DNA from: Chara braunii
Lineage: Eukaryota > Plantae > Charophyceae
Assembly: GCA_003427395.1 (NCBI GenBank)
Contig: BFEA01000043.1
Location: 4,118,439 to 4,182,438 of the forward strand
Direction of reading: 5' to 3'
Length of the DNA stretch: 64,000 bases
A program made the translations under genes and the position numbers. The stretch's first letter is position 1. Each line of letters begins with the position of its first letter. The notes below the pieces were generated by a model that searched no databases, was not told where the DNA came from, and saw only the letters and a list, made by a program, of their open reading frames with translations. Shown piece by piece: positions 9,022 to 54,974 of the stretch.

Positions 9022-9872
9022 AACGTACCTTAAGAAGAAAATAGGGTGGGTGGGAGAAGAAAATGGGGGGATATCACGAGTCCTATCAGTGAGGGGGCTA
9101 GCTGGTAGGATGGGAGTATGGCACAACAGCAGCAGAGATGGTAACTCTGTTGCAGTTAGCCTTGCCGGAGGGAGGTGTAGAGGTTTGATGGGGGGGTTCT
9201 CTGAGTCGATTTCTGAATTTTGTCATAGTCACCTCAAAATGTTTTTTTCAATCTGGCCCTAGTTTCTTTGCCAGTTTCGAGATGTTTCCGGATATTTTTG
9301 GTAGTCTTGAGAATTGTTTAGGACTCTGGGTACTTCTTGCAAAGCAGTCTAGGTTTCCTTGATATTGTTTACTCATGGATCTGTTGGTTTTTCAATGCCA
9401 GAACGATGCTGGCCGGTGCTGGGGGATTGCCCTATTACCTGTTAATAGCAGGAGCGTGAGGCCTGGTAGAGAGATCTGGGGATGCATAGGGCCAGGCATT
9501 CCAAAGGAAAACCAAGGGTTGCTGTCTGGACGACGCTGACCAGAGCTGGGGTGAGACGTGTTGCCCTGTAACCCATCAGGGTGGGGGCATGAGGCTTGGG
9601 AGAGCTCGTCAGGGAGGAGGACAGTATTAAAGAATTTTAGAATGTTTTTTTGTGGGGAGCTTCCAGGGGTTATGAGCATTCGAAGGACTTCCACTAATAG
9701 CTGTTTGAATTTTTCTAGTAGTTCCTTGTCTAAATTCATGAAATTTTCTGATGATGGGACGCTGGGCCCGGTTCCCAGTTTGTGCCAAATTAAGAGGATA
9801 TGGTTGTATCTATGGGACGCTGGACCCGGGTTCCAGCAGGTGTTGCTCCCCACCAATAGATGAACCTGTTTG

Positions 9873-9908
<36 letters not shown>
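9022..9908 (+). mobile_element. RT-less poly(A)-tailed insertion carrying the LINE 3' module
   Basis: Removing it restores D-R-S-A-A-I-R-D-L (paralog E-R-N-T-T-Y-R-D-L). AGT is duplicated at 9019-9021 and 9909-9911. Module at 9814-9866; poly(A) at 9878-9909. Confidence 0.75.
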
Positions 9909-9911
<3 letters not shown>

Positions 9912-12377
9912 GCAGCTATAAGGGATCTTATATTTGATGACTTGTGGGTCTCGATGTTCAAAACTTGGCGCCAATTACCCTACCCAATAAACATTTTCCC
10001 TCTCGATATGAGGAAGTATTGCGACAACCTATTTTTGACAATCGATGGATCACAAACATAAATAGTCGAATTTTCAATAACTCCGTCTCACCTTGGACAT
10101 TGTGGGTAAAGAAATGGGTGTTGAGGATAAAAGATTTATGGGACCCGAGGACGAAAGACTGAAAATCGGTGAAACAGCTTAGACAAACCTTGAAATATGC
10201 GCATCAACTAGTTGCTAATCTGGAACAAATTATCTTTTTTTATACCTTTGGATTGGGTCAAAACATTGAGACAAGGACCTAAGATTAGGGAAGCAGATTG
10301 GGTTGTAGGATTTCGACCGGATGAGCAACATGTGATTGGTCAGGTGGTTCACACATTTCCTCATGAAGTCTTTGTGAATATCTTCAAATCCACAATGGAC
10401 CACCTCTTGGTGCAATCTCCTTCCAATACTGTCGAAATTTTTCTCTTCACAAAACTCTACAGAATTAGAGTTCTTTATATCCCATCAATTAAGGGTTGGA
10501 AAGCCTACCATCCTCAGATGCCTATCCCTGAACTTCTCTTTGACCCAGCAAAATGGATATGGCAGACTTCAAAGAAAGAGAAACCAAGTGTTCTACAATC
10601 CTTATCAGTGAAAATAACCTATAGGTTACTTCGGAACAAGGTTGACATTTCAATAATACTTCAAGAAAGGTGGACTAGGCATCTAAATATTGATATAAAT
10701 TTCATGAGGAACATAAAGTTTTTCAAAAATATTGGACAGACACCAGCCAAGTTCTCTTCCCTACAGTGGCAGATAGCCCACCGTTGTCTGCTAACGAATG
10801 ATTGGCTCATAGATCATTCCTCACTTGAGCAGAGAGGTCTAACAACACCCTAGTGTAGTTCCTGTTAAACAGTATTCCCGAATAGGAAAATTAGAGAAAC
10901 TATAGAACATATCTTTATGCAATGTCCAGGCTTAGTTCATCTCTGGAGAAGATGGGATTGTATATGGAGGGCTACGTGACACCATCGGTCGTGGATCCTG
11001 CGGCCGAGTTTTTTGGCGGCCGCGTCAAGCTCAGGCGGGCGTGCGCGGGAAAACAGCACGCGCGCGCGGCTGTCGCACATCGGCCTCTATGGCCCTGTCA
11101 AGAAAAAAACATTAAACATTTGGGGGGGCCAGGGTTGGGGATGTGACAAAATAAATTAAAAAAATAGAAAAAAAACTAGGTTCCCAATGGTCCGGAGACG
11201 GGACGTCTCCCCCGTACGTCTCCCCCGGATGTCTCCCAGGGACGTCTCCCTCGGACGTCAGGTACCCCCGTCGTCCGGATTTCCGGACGACGGCTTTTTG
11301 GCACTAAAAAAAATAAAAATAAAAATAAATCACAGTGTTACGCATGCCCTAGAAACCCCTCACAAAAATTTTCAGATTTTTTTGAGAATTTGGTGATAGG
11401 GTGGTATTTGGAATGGGGGGAGGGGTTACGATGGGTTTTGGTGGGGATAGGAGGGGTATAGGTGGGGGTTAAAATCTTTGAAGATTTTTATTATTTATTT
11501 TACTCGCCCAAATTATCCAAAAATTTGGTGGCATACACCTAATGCAAGGTGGAAGCCACATGATTATTTTCAAAAAAAAAAAAGATGTTTTTTTTTTTTT
11601 TTTTTTTTTTNNNNNNNNNNNNNNNNNNNNNNNNNNNNNNNNNNNNNNNNNNNNNNNNNNNNNNNNNNNNNNNNNNNNNNNNNNNNNNNNNNNNNNNNNN
11701 NNNNNNNNNNNNNNNNNNNNNNNNNNNNNNNNNNNNNNNNNNNNNNNNNNNNNNNNNNNNNNNNNNNNNNNNNNNNNNNNNNNNNNNNNNNNNNNNNNNN
11801 NNNNNNNNNNNNNNNNNNNNNNNNNNNNNNNNNNNNNNNNNNNNNNNNNNNNNNNNNNNNNNNNNNNNNNNNNNNNNNNNNNNNNNNNNNNNNNNNNNNN
11901 NNNNNNNNNNNNNNNNNNNNNNNNNNNNNNNNNNNNNNNNNNNNNNNNNNNNNNNNNNNNNNNNNNNNNNNNNNNNNNNNNNNNNNNNNNNNNNNNNNNN
12001 NNNNNNNNNNNNNNNNNNNNNNNNNNNNNNNNNNNNNNNNNNNNNNNNNNNNNNNNNNNNNNNNNNNNNNNNNNNNNNNNNNNNNNNNNNNNNNNNNNNN
12101 NNNNNNNNNNNNNNNNNNNNNNNNNNNNNNNNNNNNNNNNNNNNNNNNNNNNNNNNNNNNNNNNNNNNNNNNNNNNNNNNNNNNNNNNNNNNNNNNNNNN
12201 NNNNNNNNNNNNNNNNNNNNNNNNNNNNNNNNNNNNNNNNNNNNNNNNNNNNNNNNNNNNNNNNNNNNNNNNNNNNNNNNNNNNNNNNNNNNNNNNNNNN
12301 NNNNNNNNNNNNNNNNNNNNNNNNNNNNNNNNNNNNNNNNNNNNNNNNNNNNNNNNNNNNNNNNNNNNNNNNNNNNN

Positions 12378-12424
<47 letters not shown>

Positions 12425-12460
12425 CCCGCGCACGCACACACACACATACACACACACACA

Positions 12461-13786
12461 ATCAGTTTTAAGTATGTTTTTGTCTTCCCTTTTTCTGTTT
12501 TATGTCTTTAGCCGAGCACCCTCTAGCAGTGCTAAACAGTCGGTGGTTCCTCGTTTCGAGTGCCAACTGCACTCTTAGGGGGCCCGCTCAGTTCGGGATG
12601 TCTGTGTTGCCTGTCGGTGATGACGGATGGTCGTCGGAGTGTCCCCCTGGCTCAGCGGGTGGTGGGAACCAACAGCCTGCGGGTTTCTATCGTGATGTGA
12701 GTAGGTCATGTGTTGCTTTGCTCCGTGTTGGATGTGTAGACTGTCTTGTCTGCGCTCTACCGCGGTCTTCCTGCCCGTGCCGCTTGCCTTGTCGTCCTCG
12801 CTGCTCTGCTGCCTTGCTGCCTACCCGCGGATCGTGCCTCCGTGTCTTTTGCTCGCGTGCCTTGTGGTATGGTAGCCTTGTGGCGGTGCCTCGCGCTTCG
12901 TTGCACGGTTCCTGAGCTGCTTGTCTGTGTGCCCTGTCGGCCTTCAGTGTCATTTGCGTGCATGCCTTGTAGTTTGGTTGCCTTGTTGGTGGTGCCTTGT
13001 GCTTCATTGCACGGTTGCCGAGCTGCTCGTTTGCTTGCCCTGTTAGCCTTCCACGTCCTTTACTTGCTTGCGTGCCTTGTAGTTTGGTCGCCTTGTTGAT
13101 GTTGCCTTGCGCTTCACCGCACGGTTGCCCAGCTGCTCGTCCGCTTGCCCTGTAGTTCCTTGCAGTCGTCTTTGGTGATAAGCAGTTGGGCTGCCTCTAC
13201 TATGTTGCCTGGTGCTCCACAGGGTTGTTGCCCGCTGCTATGTCCCGCTTGGGGACAGTCTGCCTTCAACATGGGTCAAAGGGTTCATGACTCAAACCAT
13301 CAAATACGGGGATTTCGCAGATTCTCGAGGGTTCAGCCTCCTGATGAGTCGGTGCAATTCCGACGAAATAATCTCATCATCATCAGTTTTCATTTTTTTT
13401 CAGTCTTTCGATTTGCCTGGGACCTGCATTTTTTTCGGTTTGCCTGCCTTGGTGTGTTTGTGTGCTGGTTTTGTGTTCTTGTTGTCTGCCCTCCCGCCTT
13501 CCCCGTGCCCTCCAGCCTGTGCCTTGATGTCTTTTTGCGTGCTTGGTTTTGGCATGCCTTGATGTTTTTCTTGTCTGCCTGGTCTTGGCATCTTTTTGGG
13601 ACTTCGCTTGCTGGTGTGCTTGCACGTTTTTGGCACTGGGGAAAGTTGGTCATAGATAACCACGTTTGTACGAGGTAGCTCCAGTGAGTAGTAGGGTGGC
13701 AGCATGCAGTGTTTGTTTGGTTGCGGCACGACGGGGTGTACCATGGGTTCCATGGGGTGCGTGGCGAGTATGCCATGGGACATATT

Positions 13787-13788
<2 letters not shown>
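12461..13788 (+). mobile_element. Non-coding hammerhead-bearing element inserted in a (CA)n microsatellite; probably a non-autonomous or 5'-truncated Penelope-like element
   Basis: Bounded by (CA)n on both sides. Internal imperfect tandem repeats at about 12860-13165. Contains a hammerhead at 13319-13374. Confidence 0.6.
13319..13374 (+). ncRNA. Type III hammerhead ribozyme (one helix III mismatch)
   Basis: AGATT-CTC | GAGG gttcag CCTC - CTGATGA - GTCGG tgcaatt CCGAC - GAAA - T - AATCT. Confidence 0.8.
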
Positions 13789-13821
<33 letters not shown>

Positions 13822-13944
13822 TAATCAATCAATCAATCAACCAAACCAATCAAGATCATATCGGATCGATAGGATCTTGATTGGTTTGATTGATTGATTG
13901 ATTGATTGACTCTCACACACAAACACACACACACACACACACAN

Positions 13945-14034
<90 letters not shown>
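13789..14034. repeat. (CA)n microsatellite interrupted by an (AATC)n/(GATT)n palindrome at 13822-13909
   Basis: Direct reading of the sequence. Confidence 0.9.
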
Positions 14035-14040
<6 letters not shown>

Positions 14041-14554
14041 ACACAAACACACACGCAAGAGGACACACACACACACCAACCCCAACTTGGCCCTTTTTTT
14101 TGTTGATTTGTTTTAAATTTTTGTATCTTCATTTTTTTTAAACACCTAATTTCCCTACAAAAAACCGAAAATCATTTCGTAAAAAAACTACAGCACAACT
14201 CAGGGACTATATCGCTCATGATAAAAAATGTCAAAAAAAAATTCCTGCTTTTTTTTGTTTTTTTTAATATTTTGTTTAAATCAAATTTTGTTTTTGAATT
14301 TTTTTAAAATCTTAAACAAAGTCGATTCCAAAATAAAAACATAGGGTTGTAGGGTTTTCCAAGCCCTACACCCTTATTTTTTTTGTTACGTATTTTTAGG
14401 GGTAAAAAAAAAAAATTAAAAAAACAGGTCGTGGACTGGGCCTCATCGGTCGCGGCCGCGGATGACTTTTTCGGCCGCAGCAGCCAAATAACCCGCTACC
14501 TAGGCCGTGGGTGTCACGTAGATGGAGGGGACTAACAAGTATAGATTGGCCTTG

Positions 14555-15962
14555 GGTGTTAGCGCTGCGTTAGCGCAGCGCTAGCATCGCACTGTGGTTT
14601 CACCGGCTCTGAATTTTTTTATTACGGACGCCGGGAGTATTGTGGGGAGGGTAACTCCCCTGCGACCGAATAGCGTTGTCGTGTCTCTCTCATGGTCCCT
14701 TCCCCTTGCCAGGTTGGCAGGCATGGGTGAGATTTGGATGACGCCCCCCATATCAGTATTATGAACAGGTCAGGGCTTTCCCCTTGGTCACAGATACGGA
14801 GCCTCCATGTATACATTGCTACTGCGTTAGCATTGGTCGGGTGCTGCTGTTAGTGGAAGGATGTTCACTCCATCAAGATGAAGAGCGGTTTGCTGTTGAT
14901 TGCCGAGGAGATGGATTTATGAAGAAGATATATATCATGCTTGTGTGGCCTTTATTTGATGATGTATTAGTTTCTTGTGACTGGAGATTTTGAAGTGGGC
15001 AATTGCAGAGGATCTAGGAGTTATCAAGGGTCAGACATGGCGTTTATCATGTTGCGGTCCTTTCGTTGGAGTGTGTGTCTCCTTTGAGTATGAGGATGCA
15101 TTGTTACCTGCGAGCATAAAGTGGTGTTTGTCGTGCCTGTGTGGCGCTGCTTGGTTGAAGTGTTGGATTTGCTAGTGCCTTTTCCTACGGTCGATAATGG
15201 ACGAGAGTAGCAGGAATATTGTCATGCCATTGGGTGCAATCATCTGTTCTTCGTGGTTGGCTTGCTATCTGCTCTTCAGGATCGACTTTTCATGTATAAT
15301 ACGCTACAGGCTGCCAGTGCCACGTGTTTTTTGTTACTGCACGAAGATGAGGAGTACTGTTGTGCCACCAGGTGGAATCTCTTGCTCTCCACCTCATGAT
15401 TGATCTGCTACAACTGCCACTCCATAATCCGCCACGTCTTTTGACTGAAATTCCCTTTGGCTGTTGGATCAGAGAAAGTGGGACATTCGACTTATTGGAA
15501 ATTTGCTTTGCTCGAAATTGACTTCAATTTTTAGGTGATTTACACTTCTTGACGTTTTTGAAGGTTTTGGTTAATGGGTCCTTAATTGGGATTTCATTTT
15601 GTGTTGAGTATTAGTCATGATTACAGTTTCTATTTTGTAAATAATTTAGGGTTAGGGATTATTACGGTAATTGTATCAGGGAATAAGTTAGAAATTTGTG
15701 TGATTGTTTTTGATAATATATAATTAATTGATACATTGGAATAGGATTAAATTCTAAGTACTAACATAGATGAGGCTTTGCAACTAGAGTTCTGCATGGG
15801 ATGGGCTGACGACAGACGTCTTCACTTTGGGAGGTCCGTGGTTGGGGATGGGACTGGCCGGAAGTGCCCCTCCCAGCCTGGATTGGCTACGGAATTCATG
15901 TGAGGGACGCCGGACCCGTTTCCCGGTTTTATAATAAATGATTTTCTTTGAAAAAAAAAAAA
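14555..15962 (+). mobile_element. RT-less poly(A)-tailed element inserted in LINE B
   Basis: Interrupts DWPW...TILLGHW. Starts with a GC-rich TAGCGC palindrome. Ends with the P1-only module GGGACGCCGGACCCGTTTCCCGGT (15904-15927), AATAAA and poly(A). Confidence 0.65.
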
Positions 15963-38831: not shown

Positions 38832-41800
38832 TTACAACTCGAAGTGGTAAGCATCCTAAATGTATATGCCCCCAATGAACCGATGGCGCGTCAAACCTTC
38901 TTCAAATCCCTTAAACCCAGGCTACCGGTAGGCATTCCCACGCTTCTGGTAGGGGACTTTAATGCAGCGCCGGACCGATGGCTGGACAAATGGAAAATCC
39001 CCACTCCTTGCCCGATTTATGTTGAGAACGACGAGAGGCTTATTGCGGAACTGTCTCAATCCCTCAACCTCTTCGATACCTTTCGCAGGCAATTCCCCGT
39101 AGACCGTCGATTCACCTGTTTCCGTAAGAACAGCACAGAAAAACATCTAAATCCCGAATAGACCTAATACTTATTTCAGAGGAATTTCAAGGGGCTCTTC
39201 AGTTAGTTGAGATCTTGCAGCCCCTACCCGGGTCTGGATCATGCAATGTGCGTAGCGATCCTTTTCTTCAGAAAAAAACGGATCGGGGTAGTGGGTTCTA
39301 CAAGCTAAACACCTCCCTCCTGACTATCAATCGCTTCAGGACCTACCTCGAGGAGGTATGGTCCTTCTGGCAGGAACAAAAATGCCAATTCCAAGACCAA
39401 ACGGTATGGTTCAACAACGGCTTGGCTTTCCTGGGCCGCAAGTGCAATGAATACTCAAAACTCCTCACGACATGGCGCCACACCGAAGAATCAAACCTAC
39501 AGCATCAACTGCTACACATGCAACTGCAGGAAACTGAGTCAGAGGACCACCAAGAGGAACTAGCCAGAACCATCTAGGCTATAGAGGCCCGTCTTGTAGA
39601 CTATATGGAATATAGATGGCAAGGCATGCGGATTCGAGGCAGACTCTCCAAACACAATATGGAAGGGGCCATGGATGCAAGGTTTTTTGCCATGGTCAAG
39701 GCGAAGTCAGGAAGAACGGTAATTGAAGCTTTGGAGGACCCCAAAGAGAAGCAAGTTCCTCTGCACACGTCCACAACCGCCTGCACAAAAATAGCAAGGG
39801 AGTTCTATCAAACCCTATTCACATTAGAGTGTGGGAATCAGCCGACCCCTCAGAGAACGAAGGAGATCGACGATTTCCTACGAGTGTTCAATAGAACTCT
39901 TACGGAATAGCAAAGAGATACTTTAGATAAACCCCTATCAAAGGAGGAAGTATGAACAACATTAACACAAATGGAAGACGAAAAAACTCCGGGTATAGAT
40001 GGTCTACCCAAAGAATTTTGGGTGTCAATGTGACCAACCATATCACTAGACCTCATGGAATATTACCAGGAGGTGTGGGCTTCAGGGCAAACCGGGGAGT
40101 TGGTGGGGCAAGGAGTGCTGACACTCCTATATAAAAAAGGGGACAAAACTAATATAAAAAATTACAGGCCAATCACCCTGCTTACGGTAGTCTACAAGAT
40201 GATGGCAAAAGCATTGGCCAATCGTATGGCCCCAATAATGTCGGGCATCATCCACCCAGACCAAATGGGTTTTAGACAAGGCAGGAACATCCAAGATAAC
40301 ATCCTCTTAGTAAACGAGATGATTAAACTATCCAGGCAATCCAAAAATAATGCAGCAATCATCTTCATTAACTTCGAAAAAGCGTACGATCACGTGGATT
40401 GGGTTTTTCTCAATAAGTGTCTGGAAAAGCTCAACTTTGGACCGGACTTTAGGCGATGGATAAAGATTCTGCATTCTAGTGCAACAACCAGGGTCTTGGT
40501 AAATGGCAACCTGGCCCCCCCCATCAACCTTCAAAGATCGGTCAGACGGGGGACCCCAGAGCCCTTTACCTTTTTGTAATAATCATGGAAGCACTGGCTA
40601 CTAATCTGAGAACTCACAAGGATATCAGAAGAATCCAAGTAACTGCAATCCCCACGGAAGCTATCCCTGTCTGCTCATTGTTTGTGGACGACTTGACCCT
40701 AATGGTAGACGCCTCCAAGGAATCAATGGAGGAGGTGCAACATATGATAGACCGATTCTGCAGACTGTCAGACATGAGAGTAAACTGGGGAAACAAAACC
40801 CAAGGGTGGTGGATCCACCATCAGGGAGTGAGACCTCCAGAACAACCCAAACTGAAATGGTTCCCAAAGGAAGCACCTATCAGAGTGCTGGGAATATCAA
40901 TGACGGCGGAGGGTAGGCCATCCATCAACAACGAATGGCTAACAGACCCGCCTCTCGTAAAAATGGCACTCTGGAAAAATAAACATACCTCGGTGTTTGG
41001 ACGCTCCCTCATAATCAATAATGTAATGTTGGCGTCGCTATGATACAAGTCAGCAATCTGGGCATTGGACAAGCATGCCCTGCGTCCTCTAAAGCGGCAG
41101 ATAACAACCTTCCTGTGGAGGGGTGACCACGAAAAACATAACGTGATTAATCGAGTGGCATGAAATTCAATAATCCAGCCTAAAACCAAAAGGGGTCTTG
41201 GCATCATTGACCCACTGGCACAGACCAAGGCACTCGCAATACAATGGATTAAACGCCTGATTTTTAATCTTGATATCCCCTGGAAAGGGCTAACCCTAGA
41301 ACAGATATCTCGACTGACACCCCAAACATTGGAAGGGAGTGACCCGAGGATGTGGCTGGAAAACAGGGATTGACCCATCCCAAGAACAAATCAGGTGCAA
41401 CAGGACTCCAACCAACACAACCCCAGACAAGCAGCAAGGGCGGATCTGCGCAATGACCCGTTCTGGCCCTCCATCCTTAAAACATGGAGGAGCCTCCCTC
41501 TGCCGGACAAAAATGCACCGAACAGATGAGAAGAAGTAGCGAGGCGACCCCTTTTTGGCAACAGATTGGTGGTAGACTCAAGGGGACAAACACTCCATTG
41601 CATGGACTCTCCTTGGCGAGGATGGGTCAAACGAGGGATAAAGAGAGTAAAAGACATATAAGACACGGAGAAAAAGGACTGGATAGGTCCCGACCAGCTA
41701 AGGGAGCGACTAAGGTACTGCCACCGGCCACAGGAAGCCCTAGAGGCGATTGTGGAAAGGATCCCCCTACATTGGTGGAGAATCCTCCACAAAGGCCCTA

Positions 41801-43470
41801 CCCTGCAAGAATCAGACTGGGTGGCAGTGAGGGGGAGACAAAGAGAAATAGGCAGGGTGGGCGGCTGCTCTCCGGATGGAACAGTGGCAGTAAACATCTT
41901 CCAAGTACGACAGGACAACACAATCCAAAAAAGCAATCAGGATGCAACCTTCGAATGTCACAAAGAAAGACTGTTCAGAATCAGAGTGCTCGAGGAAAAT
42001 GAACACTACATATCCTTCCAATCGGGCTCTCCGATCCATCATCTGGCTTTGGACCCGCTGGATTGGACACGGACAACCCATGTTGGGAAAGGAAGGAAAC
42101 ACACTAGGACATTACACGGCCTATCAATCAAGTCGACCTACAGGCTGCTGAGACCGACAATCAACCTCAAGGATCACGTAGAGGAACGCCGGAGGAACCA
42201 CCTAAACGTCAGCAAGGAAGAGCTAAGACCAATTAAGTGGTTCAAGATGGCCAAAGCGAGACCAGCCAAAATCGCCTCACTCCAATGGCAGCTTGAACAT
42301 CGCTGTTTACCGACCAGCAACTGGCTGATAGACAGAACATCCCTGGAACAGAGAGGAAACGCCCTTCCCTGGTGTAGGTTGTGCATTAACTCGTTCCCGT
42401 CCAGGAAACGACCAGAGACAATTGAGCACATCTTTTCACAATGTCCAAATGCGCTCTGGCTGTGGAGATGGTGGGACAAAATTTGGGAACAACTAGAAAC
42501 AAAACACCCGTGGCCTTGGGATTGGAGGGCGATACTGTTTGATATTTGGCCTAAACCCCACATCGACCAACACAATGAGTTTACAGACAATATGTTCAAA
42601 ATAGGACGAAGGGCGGTTCTCTCGGCACTCTAGAGACGGCGTTGTACCTTTGAAATGGAGGGAGCCAGATTAGAAGGGCCTGAGCTCACAGAAAGTATAC
42701 AACACCAGATTCAAACAGAAATTGTTGTGAAATGGGAGGAGGTCAAAACACGGATCAGACTCTTGGACACGCAAAAAGACATCCAACAAAAAATAAAGGA
42801 ATTCAGCTCAAACTGGCTTGGGGGACCCGATGGGGGGAAGATAGGGAAGGTAGAATGGAAAGGGGGACTTTTGGAATCAGGGGAAGACCAGGGGAGAACG
42901 GAGATAGTAAGAGACTGTCGATTGAGCTTCTACGAATGGACCAAGGTTGATGCGGCCATCCCCCTAAAACCCCCGGATGAATTCCCTGATTCCCCCCCCC
43001 CCCTCAAACTGCCTGGTGGAAATGATGTGGTATGGTGGATAAGGGGGAGAGGAGGAGGGTGTAGGAAGAAGGGAGAGAGGAAAGAGAGATCTATCTTGGA
43101 AGACGGGAGCGGGCAGGGGTTGGGGAACTAGTGTACAACAGCAGCAGATATGGCGCTGAGCACAAGGTGAAGAGGTTCTCCGACACCCTGCTCAGCCAAT
43201 CCCTTGATCCCCAGGGCAATCAATGCTGGCAGGGATCACTAGGCTCTCATGTTAGTCAGACTATCATCATTCTCAGTTCATTCTCAGTTCATTGTACAGG
43301 GACGCTGGACCCTTTTTCCAGCAGGTGTTGCTCCCCACCAATAGATGGAGCCTCCCCGACGGTGCTAGCGGTGTCTGCTCTTATCAGCACCTCTAGCAAC
43401 CGAGCGGGTTGTTTCCAAAACAAAACAAAAAATAAAAAAATAAATAAATAAATAAATAAAAAACAAAAAC
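38832..43470 (+). mobile_element. L1/Tx1 LINE D, 5'-truncated within the endonuclease, decayed ORF2
   Basis: YAPNE, VGDFN, YRPITLL, FEKAYD, FVDDL, ETIEHIFSQCP. YAATC motif at 43188-43233; module A at 43299-43408; (AAAT)n/A tail. Confidence 0.92.
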
Positions 43471-43830: not shown

Positions 43831-46800
43831 TTACCCCCCCCCTTTTTTTTTCCTTTTGGGTCTTACAACTGATAAGACCCCACCCACTCTCTCTTGTCAA
43901 TTCTTCCTGGCCCACCCCCAATCCCCCAGCCCTCCCTCAGTGCCTACCACTCACGACCATCACCCTGTAGTTTTGCAATTCTTTTTTTTTTTTTTTTTTT
44001 TTTTTTTTCAAACAACTTCCCCCACTAGTGTTAGTGGTGCTGATAAGAGCAGACACCCCTAGCACCTAGGGAGAGGCTCCATCTATTGGTGGGGAGCATC
44101 ACCTGCTGGAAACCGGTCTAGCGTCCCATATACAGAAAGAATTTAGAGTATCTAAGAAAGAAAACTAAGGGGCTTCTGCCAGCATTGATTACCGTGGAAT
44201 CCAAGGGATTGACTGAGCAGGCTATTGGGAAAGAGGAGTAAACCTCTTCGCCCTATAAGGCGCCAGATATCTGCTATTCCAAAACTAGTCCCTCGCCCTC
44301 CCCTCCCACCCGTTAAGTACCCAAACTTTCTTTTTTGAACTACTGTTATGCAGAGTCAATTCCGTACCACTTCGTTTCCACTAGACAATTAGATGGGGGG
44401 GGGAAGAAGTCTGGGAATGCTTCAGGGGGTTTCAATGGGATCGCTGCATCCACTTTGGTCCATTCGTGGAACCTCAAATGATAGTCTCTTACTAACTTCA
44501 TTCCTTGTTGGTCCTCCCCTGATGTTGTGTATCCTCCATTCCATTCCACCATTCCTATCCTTCCTCCGTTTGCACCCCAAGCGAGCTGGAGCTAAATTCC
44601 TGGATTTTTTGTTTGATCTTTTTATGTCCGTTGAGGAGTTGGATTTGTGCTCTGACTCCATTCCATTTTGCAGTTATTTCTGTCTGGATCTGTTGCTGGA
44701 CACTTTCTGTGAATTCGGGTCCTTCCAATCTCGCCCCCTCCATCTCGAAGGTGCAGCGTCGTCTCCAAAGTGCCCAGAGAATCGCCCGTCGTCCCATCCT
44801 GAACATATTTCCGGTAAATTCGTCTATCTGGACTAGCTGGTCTTTGGGCCAGGGTTCACACAATATGGTTTTCCAGTCCCAGTGCCATCGGGCCTTCGTT
44901 CCTAGTTGTTCCCACACCCTGTCCCACCATCTCCACAGCCAGAGTGCACCCGGACATTGGAGGAATATGTGTTCAATTGTTTCAGGTTGCCTCCGGGAAG
45001 GGAACGCGTTTGTGCACAACTTGCATCATGGGAGAACTCGCCCTTTTTGTTCCAGAGACGTTCTATCTATCAACCAGTTGTTTGTTGGAAGACAGCGGTG
45101 CTCTAGCTGCCATTGAAGTGAGGCCAGTTTGGCTGGCTTTGCCTTGGCCATCCTGAACCATCTAATTGATCTCAACTCCTCTTTGCTAATGTTCAGGTGA
45201 TCTTTCCACCGCGCCTCCACTTGGTCCCGCAGAGCAGCTTTTGGTCTTAGGAGCATGTAGGCTGATTTGACTGTTAGGGCATATATGGACTTGGTGAATT
45301 TCTTGCCCTGCCTTCCTTGGGCTGACCATGACCACTCCAACGGGTCCAGGGCTAGATGGTGAAAAGGGGTACCGGGGTAGTAGGTTATCCTTTGCTCACG
45401 TTCATAGAGTACTTTGATTCTATATACCTCTTCTATTTGGCATATTAACGCTTTGTCGGATGAGCATTCTTGGATGACATTGTCTTGCCTCACTGGAGAG
45501 AGATGCACCACTACCGTTCCATCCGGGGAGCAGCGGACTACCCTGCCCACACATCCTTGCCGATTTTTAATAGCTACCCAGTCTAATTCTTGCAAGGTTG
45601 GGCCCTTACGGAGTATTCTCCACCATGCTAGTGGGATCATTTCTATAAGCGTTTCCAGGGCTTCGTATGGTCGGTGGCAGTACGACAGTCTCTATCGTAG
45701 CTGGTCGGGTCATATCCAGTCTTTTTTATTAGTGTCTCATATATCCTTTATCCTTATTATCTCTCTCTTGACCCAACTCTGCCAGGGGTATCTGTGCAAG
45801 GGAGCATCTAGCCCTTCAAGTCCACCACGCATTTGTTTCCAAAAAGGGGTTGGCGTGCTACTTCCTCTCATCTTTCTGGCGCTGTCCTATCTGGAAGGGG
45901 GAAACTTCTCCATGCTTTGAGGAGGGTGGACCAGAAGGGATAATTGCGTATGTCCGCCCTGACTGCTTGCCTAGGGCAGTCAGGACGGGGTTCCCTTTGT
46001 TCCGATCTCGGTCCTGGAATGGGTCATCCCCTGTTTTCCAACCACGTCAGTGGGTCGGTTTCGGCCCGTGTTTGTGGTGCTTATCTGGAGATCTGTTCCA
46101 GGGCTAATCCTCTCCAGGGGACATCAGGCTTAAACAGAAGGTTTTTAAGTCATTGTAGTGCCAACGCTTTAGTTTGTATGAGGGGGTCGATAATGTCATA
46201 GCCTCCTCTCGTTTTAGGTTGGATTATAAAATGCCATGCTACTCGACTGATTACATTGTGTTTCTCGTGGTCCCCACGCCACAGAAAGACGGCTATCTGA
46301 CTCCTCAGTGGGCGTAAGGCATTCTTATCCAAAGCCCAAATAGCATATTTGTACCACATTGAGGCCATAACCACGTTGTTGATAATCAGCGCACGTCCAA
46401 ACAGTGAGGTGTGCTTGTCTCTCCAAAGGGTCATTTTGGCCAGGGGCGGCGTAGAAATCCAATCATTGTTTATTGGCGGTCTGCCCTCTGCTGTCATGGA
46501 GATACCCAACACTCTGATGGGGGCTTCCTTGGGGACCCAATTGATTTTGGGTTGTTCTAGGGGTCTCCATCCTTGGTGGTGTATCCACCATCCCAGGGTT
46601 TTGTTTCCCCAGTTGACTTTCATATCTGATAGTATACAGAAGCGATCCATCATGTGTTGTACCTCTTCCATTGACTCTCTGGATGGGTCCACCATAAGTG
46701 TCAGGTCGTCAGCAAACAAGGAGCACACTAGGATTGCCTCTCTGGGAAACGCTGCAACTTGGATTCTTTGGATGTCTTTGTGGGCCCTTAGGTTGGCAGC

Positions 46801-47764
46801 TAGTGCCTCCATGACTATGACGAAGAGGTAAGGAGCTACAGGGTCTCCTTGTCTGACAGATTTCTGGAGGCAAATATGGGGGGTCAGATTGTCGTTTACT
46901 ATTACCCTGGTCGTCGCATTTGCGTGGAGAATCTCAATCCAGCGTCTGAAGTATATCCCAAAATTAAGTTTTTCCAGGCACTTGTCAAGAAAGAACCAAT
47001 CTATATGATCGTACGCTTTCTCGAAGTCAACAAAGATGATTGCTGCATTGTTTGGACTGCCTTGTTAGCTTGATCATTTCATTAACTAGAAGGATGTTAT
47101 CTTGAATATTTATGCCCTGGATGAAACCAGTTTGGTCCGGGTGGATGATGTCCGCCATTATTGGTGTCATACGGTTAGCCAGCGCTTTCGCTACCAGCTT
47201 GTAGACCACTGTGAGCAGGGTAATAGGTCTGTAGTTCCTGATATTGGTCCTTTCCCCCTTCTTGTAGAGGAGCGCCAACACTCCCTGCCCCACTAATTCG
47301 TCCGTTTGTCCTGTTCTCCACACCACATGGTAGTAATCCATGAGGTCTTGTGAGATACTCCCCCACATGGCTTCCCAAAATTCTTTAGGAAGCCCATCTA
47401 GGCCTGGAGTTTTTTCCTCTTCCATTTGTTTCAGTGTCATCCATATCTCCTCCTTTGATATGGGTATGTCAAGAGTTTCCTTCTGTTGTTATGAGAGGGT
47501 TTTATTTAATGGACGCAAGAATACATTTATCTCCTTGGCTCGTTTTGCTCTATCTTGGTCCTGACATTCTGAAGTGAATAGTGTTTGATAAAAACCTCTC
47601 GCTATCTTCGTGCAGGTGGCGGTAGATGTGTGGAGGGGCCCTTGGTGGCATTTTGGGTCTTCCAAAGCGTCAATTATCGACCTCCCTGTTTTGGCCTTGC
47701 ATCATTTTTTAGCTTATGTTATTCGGACGACTGATTCTTTTTTGTTTCTCTTGTTTTTGAAACT

Positions 47765-49342
47765 ATGGCTGGAGTCCCGCCTAACCAAGGTTGTTTTACT
47801 TGTGGATCTCTCCACCACTGGAGTCGGGAATGTCCGCAGAGATCTCATGGCTTCCGACCACCGGCCACAAGGGCAAACGCTATTCCCACTTCGACTCCGT
47901 TACTCGCTCTTCCTGCGCCTAACGTGGCTCCAGCTCCTGCGGTCAACCAAGCTGCCTCTGGTTCTGCGGGACACTCTGCCTTCAGCTATCAACCTCGTCC
48001 AAGAACAAATTGGTGGAAAGACAACCAGGAGCAGCTGGACAAGGTCTATAACAAGTTCATGGAAGATGAAGAGAAAGAAAGGAGATGTCAGGAGTTGGAG
48101 GAAAAAGACAGAGTGAAGAAGGAGGAGGAGACTAAACGGAGTGAATGGAAGAAAGAAAGAGAGCGGCTGAAAGCAGAAATCTCTGCCAAACTCGACAAAC
48201 GTTTCGAAGAGCTTGGTCTTAAGCAAAAGGAGACACAAGAGAGCAAGGGTCTATCCGATGAAGTCACGCGTTTGAGGAAGGAGAATGAAGAACTGTTAAG
48301 AAAGATCGGTGGCGTTGCAAGTAATTATGAGGTGGATGATGAGTTGGCACGCCTTAAACGGAAAAACGAGGAATTGAGGAAGCGGCGCAGTAGGGCAAGT
48401 ACTAGTCAGGATGAGGACTGTGTTTCTCGGCTCCAGAAGGAGATCTGTGAGTTGCGGAAGCAAGTGGGAAGCAAGCAAGTAGAGAGTGACGAGATTTTTG
48501 TATTGAAACAAGAATTGGGCGAGCTTAAACAATCAGCCTACATGAAGACTAACTTCGAGCAAGAGATCGTTGGGCTACGTAGGGAGGTGGACTCTTTACG
48601 CAGAATGAACGAGAGGGCGATGGAAGAAACCAAGCAATGGAAGGATGAGGCCCTGAGGCCGGGGAACAAGCGCGGCAGTGTGGTTGTGGATACACCAGCT
48701 ATCTCAAACAGGGGTAATCCTAAGCCGAGATGGACAAAAAGTATGAAAGATGACAACAGGTGGAAGGAGGAATATAAGAAACTACAAGGACTTCATCGAG
48801 TGGCGAACGCGCAGGCTGAACTCCTGAAGGAGAAACGAGCGACTGCCGAGGTGAAACGAATGGAGGCAGAAGGGCAAGTGAAGGAGTTGGAGGAAAAGAT
48901 GAGCCGCCTGAAGGCAGCGGAGGCTGGTAATGAACGAGTGGGGGGTGGTACTAATCTTAAGGACCGTTTAGAAGCTATGGCGTTAGGGTCAGCACGAAGG
49001 GGAAAGAAAGCGATGCCGGGAAGAGGCTCCTCGAAGGAAGACCAGGTGTCTAATGAGGTTAATGATCGCTTCCAATTTGTGGAAGAACAGAAAAAGCAAT
49101 TGCGTAATCTCAAGAAGACGAGACTGGAGCTAATGTGTAAGGAAGCAGGAATTCGGACGGAAAAAGTTGATCAGATGGTTTGCGAATTAGCAGAATTTCG
49201 GGTTGAGCAGGCTTTTGGGCCTATATGGGCTAAGGATCCGGCATCCAAAGGTAAGCAGCCGGTGCATGTGGTAGAGGATGATTCGGAGCAGAGGGATGTC
49301 GACACCTCTGAGGAAGGAGATGAGAGGTCAGTGGAGTTATGA
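47765..49342 (+). CDS. PLE ORF1: CCHC zinc knuckle and long coiled-coil protein (525 aa)
   Basis: CFTCGSLHHWSREC (CX2CX4HX4C) followed by E/K/R-rich heptads; the ORF is intact. Confidence 0.85.
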   Translation: MAGVPPNQGCFTCGSLHHWSRECPQRSHGFRPPATRANAIPTSTPLLALPAPNVAPAPAVNQAASGSAGHSAFSYQPRPRTNWWKDNQEQLDKVYNKFMEDEEKERRCQELEEKDRVKKEEETKRSEWKKERERLKAEISAKLDKRFEELGLKQKETQESKGLSDEVTRLRKENEELLRKIGGVASNYEVDDELARLKRKNEELRKRRSRASTSQDEDCVSRLQKEICELRKQVGSKQVESDEIFVLKQELGELKQSAYMKTNFEQEIVGLRREVDSLRRMNERAMEETKQWKDEALRPGNKRGSVVVDTPAISNRGNPKPRWTKSMKDDNRWKEEYKKLQGLHRVANAQAELLKEKRATAEVKRMEAEGQVKELEEKMSRLKAAEAGNERVGGGTNLKDRLEAMALGSARRGKKAMPGRGSSKEDQVSNEVNDRFQFVEEQKKQLRNLKKTRLELMCKEAGIRTEKVDQMVCELAEFRVEQAFGPIWAKDPASKGKQPVHVVEDDSEQRDVDTSEEGDERSVEL

Positions 49343-52300
49343 GGTGAGCCCGGACGTGGCTACGTTGTGGCTGCTGACTAATGATTGTCGAAACAAGCGT
49401 AAGGGGGTGGGCTTATTGCCAGGTAAATCCTCTATTCTATCTAATGACGGTCAGGTACATGATGATGCGTCTTTCTCCTCGGTCCTTCCTGTTATTTCTA
49501 CTTCGACCTCTCTTGGCTCCTCTTCCCCTCTCGCCTCGTCTCTGCCATGCAAATTCCTCTCTTCTATGGTCCCAACCCTCCTTGATGATTCAATTCGTTT
49601 CTTGTGTGATAAAGCCTTTAATGGTTATTTTCGGTTACTAGTGATTGGACTTATTCTGAAAGGGCAGGTACCTTGGGCTGATAAGATTAAGGACTATATA
49701 CTGAATCTGTTGGGGAGTGGCTATGATTTTGAAAGTTGTGAGGGACCCTTGGTGTACGTCCTCGTTTCTCCCTGGTCACGACACATGTATGTGGGGTCTA
49801 CTACGCGGGATCTGCCGGTAAGATGGGGTGAGCACGTATACAGGGCACTGAGCCAAGGTAATGTCGAAGGAGGGCACCGTAATCATAAGCTGTACACGTG
49901 GCTGAGACGAGGGCGGGTTGGGGACTATGTGGCGTTACCACTGTTTCGATGTGATTTGGCTGATGTTCTTCATTTGGAGGGTTACATCATTAAGCTGTTG
50001 TGTCCTTATCTCAACAGTCGTGAGGGGATTGGGAGGAAGAAGTGGTGTCGGAAGGGTAAGTGGGAAAGGTTAAGATTGAAAAAGAAGGAGGCGGCTAATT
50101 TGGGATCTGGGGTCTCACGAACTCATTTGATTTTCCACCCTACCATTGGCAATAGATCTGCCCGACTGTCCGTTATTCTAGATCAATGCCTTTTTGTGCC
50201 CATTTCGTCGGTGGGTATTGTGTGCTCTGGGGGAGATCTATTTGCAGAGAACTGGAAGGTACTGAGAAGGAGGTTTGGTTCTTCCTTCATTACGGTAAAT
50301 GGGCACACGGAGATTTTGAAGAAAGGGAAAGGGATGTTCAGATTTGACAAATATGTCTACGTCTCTATGATTGTCCCCTTCATGTGTAAGTCTCTGATTC
50401 TGAAGCCATCTTTGGCTGCCTTGCTGTCAAATTCTGTCTCTAGAAAGGAGTTAAAAACATGGGACTTCTCCGTTCTTGTTCGTGCTTTCTCAACTATCCG
50501 ATGTTTTGCAGAGAAACGGAGTTGCTTTCTTCTCAGGTTGATCCTATCTGGGGTGATTAAGCGAAGGTTTGGCTGTAATATTAGACGACGCTTGGTGGTG
50601 AAGGTTACGTATGATATGACTCTGAGCAAGCCTGGAATTCGATCCCTTTGCTCTCGATTGGTCATGAGTGTTGAGGGTAATGAGGAATGAAAGAAGATGG
50701 TGGTACGGAGGATGAGAATTGTTTGGAAGAAGAACAAAAGTGTGGGGGATATTCTATTTAATTTTAGGGAATTTGCTCGGGGCAGTGATGTCTTGTGTGC
50801 ATGTCCTACCATGACAAATGGATTCCCTCAGGTTAATGGTCATATTTGCTTCCGTTTGAACGAATTTGCTAAGGCACCGTCTTGGCTGCGAAATAACAGG
50901 AACGTGGCTCGACCCTCTCAGTTGAATGTGATTGGCCGTTTGAAGAAAGAGATTGGTCGTTCTTTTGAGGGAATGGATTTTCCAAGTCCCACGCTGCGGA
51001 GAAGGGATATGGTCGATTGCACGAAGGTAACACGGGAGGATGGCCTGACTTGCTGCTCTGAGGATGATGTGGTTCGTTGGAAGTTGTTACTAAAGGATCT
51101 GGTAAGAGTACGAATCGACCACAACCCAGGGGACACATTGGTGTGCTGCCCAGTGCGATACCGTGAAGGTATGAATACTCTTTTTCTGAAGAATCTTGGT
51201 TTCAGTGTTTGTGAGGAAGGAGAGCGATCTCTGCTATGCGAGGCCAAGGAAGAGTACATGCGGCGAGGGTTATCTCGATTAGCTAAATGAGATTCTACGG
51301 GGGAACTGGGAAAAGCTTACGCCATTCCTAAATACAAAGATTTTCAAAGATGGCGTCCTATTTGTCCCTCATTCTCGGAGTGCAATGTTCATGCCTGCAG
51401 GAAAGTCTCCCGTTGTGTCAATATGATGATATCGAGTTTACCTCGGCGTTCAAATTTCAACTTAAAATGTACTGATATGTTGGTGGAATCGTTGGTTGAG
51501 GTTAACAAGGATCTGGGGAGAAATGAGGGGTTACTCACAACAGCCTTTGACATCAAAGAAATGTTCTACAATCTTCCACACGGCTCTATCTTGAAGACAC
51601 TCAGTTGGATTATAAATTTATGGGAAGGACGGGGAGTGAGAAGTATGTTGTTGAAGAACCGAGGAAAGGAGGGTAAACTACAAACTGGCAATAAGCAGGA
51701 GAGATGGCAGAAGGTTGACTTCGACCTCATCAGAGTCTTTGTGGGTTTTGATCTGGATCGTACCTACACTTCTGCGTGTGACCGGGTTTTGAAACAGAAC
51801 GTGGGGATACCGATGGGCAAACCCTCCAGTCCAGTCATTGCATGTCTTCTATGTGCTTTCGCTGAATTCTCCTTTTTGGTGTCTTTGGGTTATGACCGAC
51901 GTCTCATTCACGGTATTCGCTTGATTGATGACATGTCAGTTTTTGTCTGATATCTGAAGGACGATGAAGGCTCCAAGGCGAGGGCGGTTGACATACTTAG
52001 GAGTTTTTAGGCTTGCTATGACTGCAATTTGAAGCTGGAATGCACAAGCAGATTAGATGAATGGGATTTCCTGGGATGCACTCTCAGCAACTTGGGATGA
52101 CCCATGGGGGTTAGATGTGCTCCTTTTCATAAGAACCAGAGGGTCATTTTGTCAGAAGGTATCTGCTTTCAAAGCATGCAGGACAATTGTTCTTTCGTGA
52201 GCAAGCAACAAAAGATTGTTGTGGTGGGATCTTTGATGCATCGGGCAAAAAAGTTCACGAGTATACCCTTGGCGGAAGCTAGTTTTCTCCTGAAATTAAA

Positions 52301-52433
52301 GGTTGAACTGAGAATGCGAGATTTCAAGGACGAGATTTTTTATCAAGCTCTGACCAATTTCTCTCTCAAGTTTGGTGGCGCTTGGGATGATTGGGTTGAT
52401 TGCCTTACACTATGGGACCGCCTCTTCAAGTAA
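49278..52433 (+). pseudogene. PLE ORF2: GIY-YIG endonuclease followed by Penelope-type reverse transcriptase; in-frame stops
   Basis: LVYVLVSPWSRHMYVGSTTRDLPVRWGEH ... LEGYII..LCPYLN (GIY-YIG). WRPI, AFDIKEMFYNLPH, KQNVGIPMGKPSSPVIACL, IRLIDD, WDFLG (RT). One frame throughout. Confidence 0.9.
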
Positions 52434-53153
52434 TTAGCTTCTAGGGGGCACCTGAACTGACTCTGTTTTCTTCCTTTCTGAGGGGCTTGTGATGATCCTG
52501 AGTACTAGGGGCCACCTGTTTTCATCTCTCTCCACTGTCAGATGTGTTTTTTCTTTTTTCTTTTTTCTAGGGTCTATTGCTGTTTCGAACCAGCGATCTT
52601 AGTTTCCTTTTTCTGAGCTGGAATGGTAGGGTTAACCCGTTTTTTGTGTTTGTTTTTTTCTTTTTTGGGTTTTTGCTGGCTCGAACCTGAGATCTCAATC
52701 TATTCTCCCTCTTTCTCGTAATTCAGTCGGTGAAGGTTCTCGACCTCAAGACCTCTGTCTGATGCTCTGGGTTTCTTTCACCTGGGTTCGAACGTATGCA
52801 CTTTTGGCTATCTGTCGGTTTCTAGGGTCTTCGCACTTTTGGCTATCTATCGGTTTCTAGGGTCTTCGCTTTTGGCCCGATAGACGTTTCCTCTCAAGGT
52901 TACCTTCTTGGGCTCGAACTAGCCGCCTGTCGGGGCCTTTCTTGTTAGTGGTCTATATGGGTGCACGACTTCTAGAGGTTACTTTCGGACATTCTGACTC
53001 AGCTCCTGGCTAGTTTTTTCGTCTAGTTTCTTTCAGATGGCTACGTTTCCTAAGGTCTTCGAAGTTTCTGATCCTACCTTTGTGTCTATCGGTTGTCGAT
53101 GTTTTCTTTAAATTGATTGCTTGATACGTTAGTTGGCAACTTGTAGTGACGAA

Positions 53154-53207
53154 GACCCCTGACGATTCCGGTGCGGCGACCGGATGAAACGTAGGGTTAC
53201 ACGCCGT
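53154..53207 (+). ncRNA. Minimal type I hammerhead ribozyme (PLE type) with putative loop II pseudoknot
   Basis: GACCC-CTGACGA-TTCCGGT gcggcg ACCGGAT-GAAAC-GTA|GGGTT. Loop GCGGCG is complementary to downstream CGCCGT (53202-53207). Confidence 0.88.
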
Positions 53208-54974
53208 CATGTCCGGCATAGATGTTGATGAGGTCCGGCTTGATGCCTGCATACGTGCTGGACACTTGGAGCTGAGCTATGTTGACCAAATTTTTTTGAA
53301 GCTCATTGGGTCGCGTTCGGGAAGACTCTGACGTGTCACTTTCGATTTCTCTTCTTCCGCTTCATCTGATTATTTCCTTCCTACTTCTCTTCTATCTGTC
53401 TCTCGTCTGTTTTTCTCTCATCCTTTGACTTTATTGTGACATGTGGTCTTCATCTTGGGTGGATAGGCCATGTTGGCCGAATGTTGTTTGTTAATTCGGA
53501 TTGATTTGCTGGTTATGCTAAATAGGCCGCTGACGGCCGACGTCTGATATCCGTGGCTAACAATGATGCTTGTGTGATGTGTTTTACGCCTTGCATACTT
53601 ACCTTAGTCATTGCAAAGAACCTTGCATCCATTGCTCCTTCCATATTATGTTTAGAAAGTTTACCCCGGATCCTGACTCCTTGCCACCTGTGTTCCATGT
53701 GATTCATGAGTTGGTCTTCTAAAGTCTGGATGGTCTTAGCTAGCTCCGCTTGCTGTTCAAGGTCGTTGGTTTCATCTTCCTGTGATTGCAGTTGTCGTAG
53801 TTGATGTTGTAGCTTTACCTCCTCGGCGTGTCGACGCGCCGTGAGTAACTTTGAGTACTCATTGCACTTGCGGCTCAAAAAAACAAGACCGTTGTTGACC
53901 CACAATATATCATTGTTGACCTGGCCTCCGAGTCTCTGTGTTTTTCAGAAGGACTACACATCATTTAGATAGATAATGAAACGATCGTTGGATAAGAGGG
54001 ATGTATTGAGTTTCTAAAAGTCCCTCCCTTGATCAGGTTTTCTCCTGAACGAGAAGGTGGCGAGACATAGCGCGTGGTCCAGACCCGGGTGGGGGCTGCT
54101 GGGGAATATCTCTGACATTTGAAGGGCCCCTTGTAATTCTTCTGAAATTAAGATAAAATCTATGCGTGACTTCGATGCTCTCTCCGTGGTGTTCTTACGA
54201 TAACACGTAAAACGGCGCGCATTGGGGTAGCTCCTTCGAAAGGTATCGAAGAGGTTGAGAGATTGTGAACGTTTCGTGAGTATTCTCTCGTCATTTTCCA
54301 TGTAACTTGGGCAGGGTGATGGGGTTTTCCATCTATCCAACCACCGGTCCAGAGCCGCATTGAAGTCCCCCACCAAAATCGTGGGGATGCCAACCGGTAG
54401 TTTGTCCTTTAAAGACTCAAAGAAGGTTTGTCTTGCCGCCGGGTAGTTGGGGGCATAAATATTCAGGATGCTTACCACTTCCAATTCCAACATTGCAAGT
54501 AAATAGACCCATCTGCCTTCTTCCTGGTATGCTGCCCAGTTGAGCATCTCCACTTTTGATCCAGGCGGGAGTCATATGGCGACTCCACCACTTCCGGGCC
54601 GTGGGGCGTGGGCGCAGAAGACCTGATGTGACCAGATCTCTTTGTGTGTGTGATTCTGTTCTGGACTGTTCATGAGGTGGGTTTCTTGCAGGCATACGAC
54701 ATCCAGCCAGTCTCTCCCTTCTACTCCTTTTAACTGGTCAAAAATTGCTTGTCTTTTAGGGAACTTTGCTGAGGCAAGTCTGTTTACATTGAGTGAGCGC
54801 AGGTTGAGGTCCACTTGCCGTTTACAAAGTTTCAAGGTTTTATCCTTGCCGTATAGTGCGTCTAATATATTCATTCTTTTGTTATCCAGTTGTCTTTGTA
54901 TGCATTTTTGTCTCGCACGATTTGATGTTTTTTTTTTTTTTTTTTTTTTTTTATTTATTTTTACAGGGAGAGTC

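Follow-up and report, generated by a model that had tools for sequence, protein, structure and literature searches.

A 64,000-nt stretch of the Chara braunii genome (assembly GCA_003427395.1, contig BFEA01000043.1, positions 4,118,439 to 4,182,438 of the forward strand; here called the window) harbors a Penelope-like element (PLE) on the plus strand, inserted into a long interspersed nuclear element (LINE). The host is one LINE of the apurinic/apyrimidinic endonuclease (APE) type, lying on the minus strand and decayed into short open reading frames (ORFs), while the insert is an old, decayed, two-ORF PLE of the Chlamys type. Read on the minus strand, the ends of the insert stand in GT...AG order, and the first-pass annotation had therefore taken the element for a retro-introner, whose RNA tail would anneal to proto-splice sites and write a splice donor on every insertion, with the target duplication supplying the acceptor. 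Two parts of that proposal, the conserved donor-like tail and the annealing-primed insertion, are upheld by the data below; the rest is not supported, given a tail and targets that differ from those proposed, no systematic acceptor, a family of two copies outside genes and no RNA reads on the element. The evidence points to an ordinary PLE insertion in which the intron-like frame is a by-product.

The minus-strand junctions read AAG/GTAAGTATG ... TGATGCAAG/GCC (a slash marks a junction throughout). Upstream, the LINE runs ...GCA ATG ACT AAG up to position 53603 and is followed by GTAAGTATGCAAGG from 53602, giving ...GCA ATG ACT AAG/GTAAGTATGCAAGGCG across the boundary; downstream, ...AAAAAATGATGCAAG ends at 47696 and GCC AAA ACA GGG AGG begins at 47695. 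Taking out the segment from 47696 to 53602 (5,907 nt) restores the LINE frame, MDARFFAMTK/AKTGRS, collinear with a paralogous LINE that reads MDARFFAMVKAKSGRT at the same place (~39690). Both flanks are collinear with this paralog at ~71% identity, and the site itself shows a net indel of 0 relative to it, with 13 nt unaligned on each side. The junctions and the restored frame, as first described, are thus seen in the sequence, and agree with both the collinear paralog and uninterrupted DNA contigs (see below).

The earlier assignment of the insert to the PLEs is likewise borne out by its ORF1 and ORF2 domains and by its homology to C. braunii PLEs. ORF1 is annotated in the C. braunii genome, its exact sequence is present in NCBI/UniRef (as P0090), and its homologs carry the names of Chara braunii CCHC-type proteins. 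In ORF2, a GIY-YIG endonuclease (EN) domain at residues 158 to 188 (Pfam E=0.0035, below gathering) is followed ~550 amino acids (aa) downstream in the same frame by a weak RVT_1 reverse transcriptase (RT) match (Pfam E=0.007, below gathering), and between the two a CxC linker, ...DVLCACPTM..., was recognized by eye in the translation rather than by a profile. PLE-type RT, N-terminal GIY-YIG and CxC linker are features of the Naiad/Chlamys (N-terminal EN) clade. ORF2 is 42 to 55% identical over ~900 aa to ORF2s of C. braunii PLEs, the best relatives being on scaffolds of GCA_003427395.1; these relatives came from an exhaustive protein search, whereas a word-indexed search with a 470-aa piece of ORF2 gave none, probably because of low-complexity words. 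The frame is broken by stops at 50688, 51288, 51948, 52008 and 52098, all of them derived point changes relative to two related loci, L007 and L006 (TGG to TGA three times, AGA to TGA and GAG to TAG). That the four in-frame TGA codons might encode selenocysteine was considered and is ruled out by this derived state of all five stops; the copy has simply decayed.

For comparison, twelve loci of the same genome (given here by L numbers) were collected through protein relatives, and unit ends were fixed by pseudo-long terminal repeats (pLTRs), independently of the flanks. The closest relative is a sister copy in L007, which aligns from 9554 to 15412 with 47696 to 53603 of the window at 86.4% identity by blastn (88.7% over ungapped columns) and which has an upstream pLTR; neighboring families are represented by L006 (74% identity to the window copy), L008 (67%) and L009 (67%). 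DNA reads and contigs of two samples covering the locus were used to determine copy number. Summed depth over the element body is ~2 times that of single-copy contigs, and the second copy in the reads carries exactly the differences of L007 (44, 58 and 69 in three segments); at identities of at least 86%, the family of the window element consists of two copies, the window copy and L007. At 53621, in the LINE flank, depth rises to ~1300 to 1500, indicating roughly 100 related LINE copies. DNA contigs of both samples also contain an uninterrupted form, in which 47694 is joined to 53602, 5,907 nt are skipped and four letters fit both sides; these contigs fix the empty-site (target) sequence as GGCCTTAG. 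They are paralogous LINEs. The haploid state of the Chara thallus speaks against an empty allele as their source.

Two further observations were made in the same DNA data. Contigs of both samples join window position 47758 to ~52549, that is, the first ~60 nt of the element to its 3' untranslated region (UTR), with 25 to 30 unrelated letters between, suggesting that the genome contains, at another place, an internally deleted relative that is probably non-autonomous. In the second sample (X4), ~20 positions within 47818 to 53372, including 50690 and 51290 (TGA versus TGG), show the alternative base only, suggesting either strain-level polymorphism at the window copy or two copies collapsed in the X4 contigs. 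The features of the window and of the related loci are collected in Table 1.

Table 1. Features of the window and of related PLE loci in C. braunii (coordinates are those of the window unless a locus is named; +, plus strand; -, minus strand)
Feature	Position	Strand	Basis or remark
Paralogous LINE, uninterrupted at the homologous site (empty-site reference)	38841..43424	+	Alignment with both flanks
Host LINE, downstream part (RT region), decayed	44000..47695	-	Pfam RVT_1 E=5.5e-9 at 47027-47440; aligns with paralog 39708-43424
Left CCTT copy	47695..47698		CTT is also internal element sequence (CTTGC); antisense reading gives the "acceptor" AG
PLE (Chlamys type), single unit without pLTR, 5'-truncated by ~55 nt relative to sister	47696..53603	+	Alignment with L007
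ORF1, 525 aa, intact; CCHC zinc knuckle and long coiled-coil-like region (gag-like)	47765..49342	+	Pfam zf-CCHC E=2.7e-4
ORF2 frame; GIY-YIG N-terminal, CxC linker (LCACP), RT C-terminal; 5 in-frame stops	49278..52433	+	Pfam and translation
Hammerhead-like core: CUGACGA, stem CCGG/CCGG, GAAACGUA	53150..53199	+	Motif-level reading, in block conserved across families
Conserved 3'-UTR hairpin GGCCG-CTGA-CGGCC	53525..53538	+	5 pairs in alignment fold; one pair kept by two-sided change in L008
Terminal octamer TACTTACC	53596..53603	+	Complement of G/GTAAGTA; window copy lacks the canonical continuation A(TC)
Right CCTT copy	53602..53605		CC is also the end of the element's TACTTACC; TT is target
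Host LINE, upstream part (AP-endonuclease region), decayed	53604..54553	-	Pfam Exo_endo_phos E=4e-6 at 54014-54553; collinear with paralog
Window 3' end			...GCCTTGCATACTTACC/ttagtc (also written ...GCATACTTACC/ttag)
L007 3' end			...CGTACTTACCATC/ctagg
L007 pLTR end			...CGTACTTACCATC/gatttaatgc (unit start)
L006, both ends			...GCGTACTTACCATCA/
L008, both ends			...GCGTACTTACCA/
L001 unit 3' end			CACTCACCAT; antisense donor GTGAGT
L012 unit 3' end			ATCTCACCAT; antisense donor GTGAGA
L009 unit 3' end			TACTAACCATC; antisense donor GTTAGT; octamer variant TACTAACC
L003 unit 3' end			CAATTACCA; antisense donor GTAATT
L004-B unit 3' end			TATCAACCA; antisense donor GTTGAT
L004-A unit 3' end			ACTTCACAC; donor not scored
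L011 unit 3' end, three tandem junctions			CTCTCAACAT; no GT in register
Unit starts with hairpin CGTAG-N8-CTACG	L001:9709; L003:9548; L004:1400 and 9942; L006:9884; L007:9520; L009:9582; L011:9251/14920/20419; L012:9882		
U6 snRNA-like sequences	L003:16302-16404; L007:7544-7690; L006:18390-18502	+ (PLE strand)	That of L007 has a T-rich insert

The claim that the terminal ACTTAC is encoded by the element holds. TACTTACC is invariant in seven of seven termini (one from the window and two each from L007, L006 and L008) that belong to four related families, 67 to 86% identical in nucleotides to the window copy, in an alignment whose columns average 68% identity. Since the octamer is element-encoded and conserved, its match to a splice donor goes beyond chance for this clade, and each of its 3' junctions places G/GTAAGTA on the antisense strand, in the form G/GTAAGTAC. 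The octamer is identical to what we take to be nucleotides 2 to 9 of U1 snRNA, and ATACTTACCT at 53595 to 53604 presumably matches nucleotides 1 to 10, the reference being the textbook U1 and not a Chara U1 gene. The tail had first been given as ACUUAC-CUU; the canonical one is ACTTACCA(TC), or ACUUACCA(UC) as RNA, and the window copy stops at ACC, its following TT belonging to the target. Outside the clade, the donor is less regular (Table 1). Its proposed writing on every insertion applies to the clade of seven termini and breaks down in L009, L003, L004-B and L011; good donor likeness is found in about half of the families (window/L007, L006, L008, L001 and L012), whereas an ...ACCA-like end is more general. 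The 3' ends of L002 and of the downstream copy of L009 are unreadable, as they run into (CT)n or assembly gaps.

A consensus fold of eight termini consists of the hairpin GGCCG-CTGA-CGGCC, a second hairpin UACGC-N4-GCGUA and a single-stranded tail CUUACCA(UC). No conserved sense-strand partner (GGTAAGTA) for the tail was found within the element. A stem-loop followed by a short target-pairing tail is the usual 3' recognition and priming module of retroelements, and we infer that the octamer is most likely conserved for recognition or priming by the RT, as a single-stranded tail after a hairpin.

Targets and duplications at the insertion sites are consistent with such a role. In the window, a 4-nt direct repeat, CCTT on the plus strand, flanks the insert, so that the boundary is ambiguous and five excision registers are equivalent; antisense GT..AG appears in only one of the five (register +1). 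Because the left CTT matches internal element sequence, the 5' junction shows microhomology, and the CC that the right copy shares with the end of TACTTACC gives microhomology at the 3' junction; both window junctions thus read as microhomology joins within a 4-nt stagger. The direct repeats at the L007 and L008 insertions are CCATCCTAGG and CCAACGCGTAGC, respectively. Their first 3 to 5 bases overlap the element tail, and the last three of L008 also overlap its truncated 5' start. Tail and target share CCATC in L007, CCA in L008 and CC in the window, and this overlap supports an insertion in which the tail pairs with the nicked target to prime reverse transcription, in agreement with the first-pass annotation on this point. 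The common target motif is CCA or CC, read in antisense as TGG/ or GATGG/, and not the AAG/G proto-splice site that had been expected. Separately, the octamer CCTTGCAT occurs three times around the insertion, at 53589 to 53596 near the 3' end of the element, at 47695 to 47702 on the 5' junction and, within the LINE flank and 20 nt from its edge, at 53622 to 53629; this third occurrence belongs to the LINE and is found in the paralog too. The recurrence may reflect chance or an additional RNA-target pairing at insertion.

An in-register antisense acceptor needs CT at repeat positions 2 and 3, that is, a CCT target, while the usual CCA gives TG. Accordingly, L007 has no GT-AG in any register of its direct repeat (scripted), no GT-AG register could be read from the repeat of L008, and boundary reading revealed no GT-AG in L001, L003, L004-A or L004-B. 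Among the insertions examined, the exact GT-AG unit is therefore confined to the window copy (0 of 2 others with a mapped direct repeat and 0 of 4 more by boundary reading), contrary to the idea that the duplication would supply an acceptor, even after 5' truncation, as a general intron geometry. The predicted acceptor of the window copy is AAG and is preceded by a tract rich in A; of the final 25 nt, 7 are pyrimidines. In addition, 5' ends vary among copies, which include truncated pLTRs and tandem arrays, and the L007 unit begins 53 to 56 nt further upstream than the window copy.

We consider it likely, at a probability of roughly 0.75, that the locus records an ordinary target-primed insertion of an old, decayed PLE with microhomology at both junctions. 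Target-primed reverse transcription would have begun at a cut staggered by 4 nt (CCTT), where the nicked LINE-sense strand, ...ACTAAGG-3', could pair by two bases with the CC of the RNA tail ...UACUUACC(AUC) and prime cDNA synthesis, an order of nicking and priming that we infer. At the 5' end, a microhomology of three bases (CTT) ~55 nt into the unit would then have allowed the junction to be sealed. Antisense GT is explained by the conserved terminal octamer of the element, and antisense AG only by the window target, which had CCT following the nick instead of the CCA seen in relatives. A conserved terminus and one particular target would thus produce the GT...AG frame as a by-product, not as a designed intron. 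Some findings weigh against this reading. An invariant 8-mer that is a perfect 5' splice-site complement flush with the junction has an a priori chance of ~1 in 65,000 (for any one given 8-mer), and L001 and L012 retain good alternative donors at that place; for these reasons, we leave a small probability to selection on the octamer as an antisense donor. The RNA test described below is also a weak one, given the small part of the runs that was read and a host LINE that is probably silent.

Such selection would be part of a proto-introner strategy, in which the clade keeps UACUUACC as a retroelement device to write an antisense 5' splice site, so that antisense copies within genes are partly spliced away and those at CCT targets become exact new introns. 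We regard this as unlikely. It would account for the octamer being invariant in the seven termini, for the donor lying flush with the junction in each of them, for GTGAGT and GTGAGA at the same place in L001 and L012 and for the exact GT-AG unit of the window copy, and introners that derive from retrotransposons have been described in other eukaryotes (PMC12130899). However, neither element nor duplication provides an acceptor in L007 or L008 (in any register) or at the boundaries of L001, L003, L004-A and L004-B, the variable 5' ends and the pyrimidine-poor acceptor of the window fit poorly, and L009, L003, L004-B and L011 have poor donors or none. Where introners have many near-identical copies in introns of unrelated genes, the window family has its two copies, and where both splice sites come from element or duplication at every insertion, here the donor is found in four families and the acceptor in the window copy. 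The expectation that copies within genes would coincide with intron boundaries fares no better: L006 and L007 overlap no annotated host gene, Pfam searches of the ORFs adjoining the L007 and L008 insertions matched no family and recognized no host gene, and the only host of the window copy is a dead LINE.

Spliced RNA reads had also been anticipated. In two oligo-dT runs, of each of which 6 to 12% was read, 3 and 9 RNA reads matched the locus, all 90 to 95% alike and all on the LINE flank; none fell on the element and none carried the 47695/53603 joint. The host LINE is probably silent. A transcript read crossing that joint could come from the uninterrupted LINEs seen in the DNA contigs and would be no proof of splicing. 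A single RNA read that joins 47676 to 53608, with 24 extra letters, represents such an uninterrupted paralogous LINE.

The motif might instead act on the sense strand, as a branch site (yUnAy: CUUAC, CUAAC or CUCAC) ~29 nt upstream of a conserved YAG/G just inside the next unit, serving a 5'-UTR intron that spans the pLTR/body junction. An intron of this kind is documented for Penelope and Chlamys-3_cRei (PMC8557442). Across eight full tandem junctions, the spacing between an A-C close to the end of the unit and a downstream CGCAG, CGTAG or CATAG hardly varies, and the L009 variant TACTAACC is closer to the branch-site consensus while its antisense donor is spoiled. Against this, the YAG belongs to the hairpin CGTAG-N8-CTACG, whose conservation accounts for that of the YAG with no need of splicing. 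Moreover, yUnAy is a highly degenerate consensus, no donor on the sense strand was identified, and 3' ends without a unit downstream conserve the motif just as well; we therefore hold a branch-site function to be improbable. Pure coincidence, in which GT and AG are chance dinucleotides of a random insertion with no element-encoded signal, is the least probable of all, for although five registers on two strands would give GT..AG in ~4% of random insertions and very many junctions were screened, G/GTAAGTA is encoded by an octamer conserved in related families, so that the sister copies refute it for the donor side and it still applies to the acceptor side.

Other features of the element agree with its classification or were noted in passing. 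No direct repeat of the element, and hence no pLTR or partial tandem structure, was found anywhere in the window, while the sister in L007 as well as L001, L003, L004, L008 and L011 have pLTR or tandem structures; single 5'-truncated units are a normal outcome for PLEs. In L011:8368-26005, at least three PLE units, mutually 88 to 92% identical, follow one another head to tail with a period of ~5.4 to 5.7 kb. The hairpin CGTAG-N8-CTACG lies ~20 to 30 nt inside the 5' start of the unit in every family examined, followed in several by GTGTGTGTG, and is missing from the window copy because of its 5' truncation. The block around the hammerhead-like core is conserved with L001, L002 and L009 and is represented by ~15 to 20 genomic repeats; read depth over 53050 to 53249, in the 3' UTR, is 170 to 265, versus ~25 over the element body. 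Rfam reported no hammerhead at E<=10 on the element or the conserved block, none at gathering in six sister loci and no family of any kind in the window. The 3' UTR also contains a 35-nt tandem duplication, 97% identical, at 52798 to 52867. U6 snRNA-like sequences above the Rfam gathering threshold occur ~1 to 2.5 kb from the PLE insertion in three of six loci, and none in the window; retro-pseudogenes of U6, or a Chara repeat derived from U6, may account for them.

The window insert is thus a further decayed copy of a known type of C. braunii retrotransposon, nested in a dead element and without bearing on any gene. What is new is that the 3' end of the clade is defined to the base, as a hairpin followed by a CUUACCA(UC) tail, and that tail and target overlap by 2 to 5 nt at three independent insertions, which lends sequence-level support to annealing-primed integration in PLEs with N-terminal EN. 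As the integration mechanism of these PLEs is poorly known, both are a modest addition. That the tail is the exact complement of the 5' splice-site consensus is a small curiosity; every insertion of the clade sets G/GUAAGUA flush at its antisense boundary, and were this, as we doubt, a selected splicing device, the element would be a first PLE-derived proto-introner.

Introners are described as many near-identical copies that form annotated, spliced introns of unrelated genes (Gozashti et al. 2022, 2025; PMC9860276, PMC12130899), and among classified families, LTR retrotransposons make up ~12% and non-LTR retrotransposons ~5% (PMC12130899). The latter paper makes no mention of PLEs, PLE-derived introners or Chara, and a search of the literature for PLEs that combine a splice donor with antisense orientation returned nothing relevant. 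Like introners, the window insert is a mobile element bounded by GT...AG, with the host frame restored on removal and a splice signal partly in the target duplication; unlike them, it has two copies, no gene context and a donor as its only element-encoded site, and is known from sequence only. The maize elements Ds, dSpm and Mu are DNA transposons for which splicing via terminal splice sites, usually imprecise, has been shown experimentally. There, too, terminal element sequence serves as donor or acceptor, and host transcripts lose most of the insertion, a likeness that in the window is confined to the DNA.

Closest to the window element are the Chlamys-type PLEs of C. braunii (Chlamys-2_cBra type), described with a gag-like ORF, hammerhead, pLTRs and tails (Craig et al. 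2021, PMC8557442). In the main text of that paper, we found neither an invariant terminal TACTTACCA nor target duplications bearing microhomology. The window copy differs from this type in lacking a pLTR, in its site, which is LINE coding sequence in place of a (CA)n or (C)n repeat, and in a motif that, unlike the canonical hammerhead, is not called by Rfam. It shares with it the upstream gag-like CCHC ORF, GIY-YIG N-terminal to the RT, the CxC linker, a hammerhead-like 3' motif, frequent 5' truncation and genome-wide spread, and pLTRs and tandem arrays are present here in the sisters L001, L003, L004, L007, L008 and L011. At its 3' end, the element resembles the recognition modules of non-LTR retroelements in its conserved hairpin, short single-stranded tail and 2- to 5-nt overlap of tail and target at the junction, with the difference that the tail ends in CCA(UC) with a U1-like octamer and not in poly(A) or a microsatellite.

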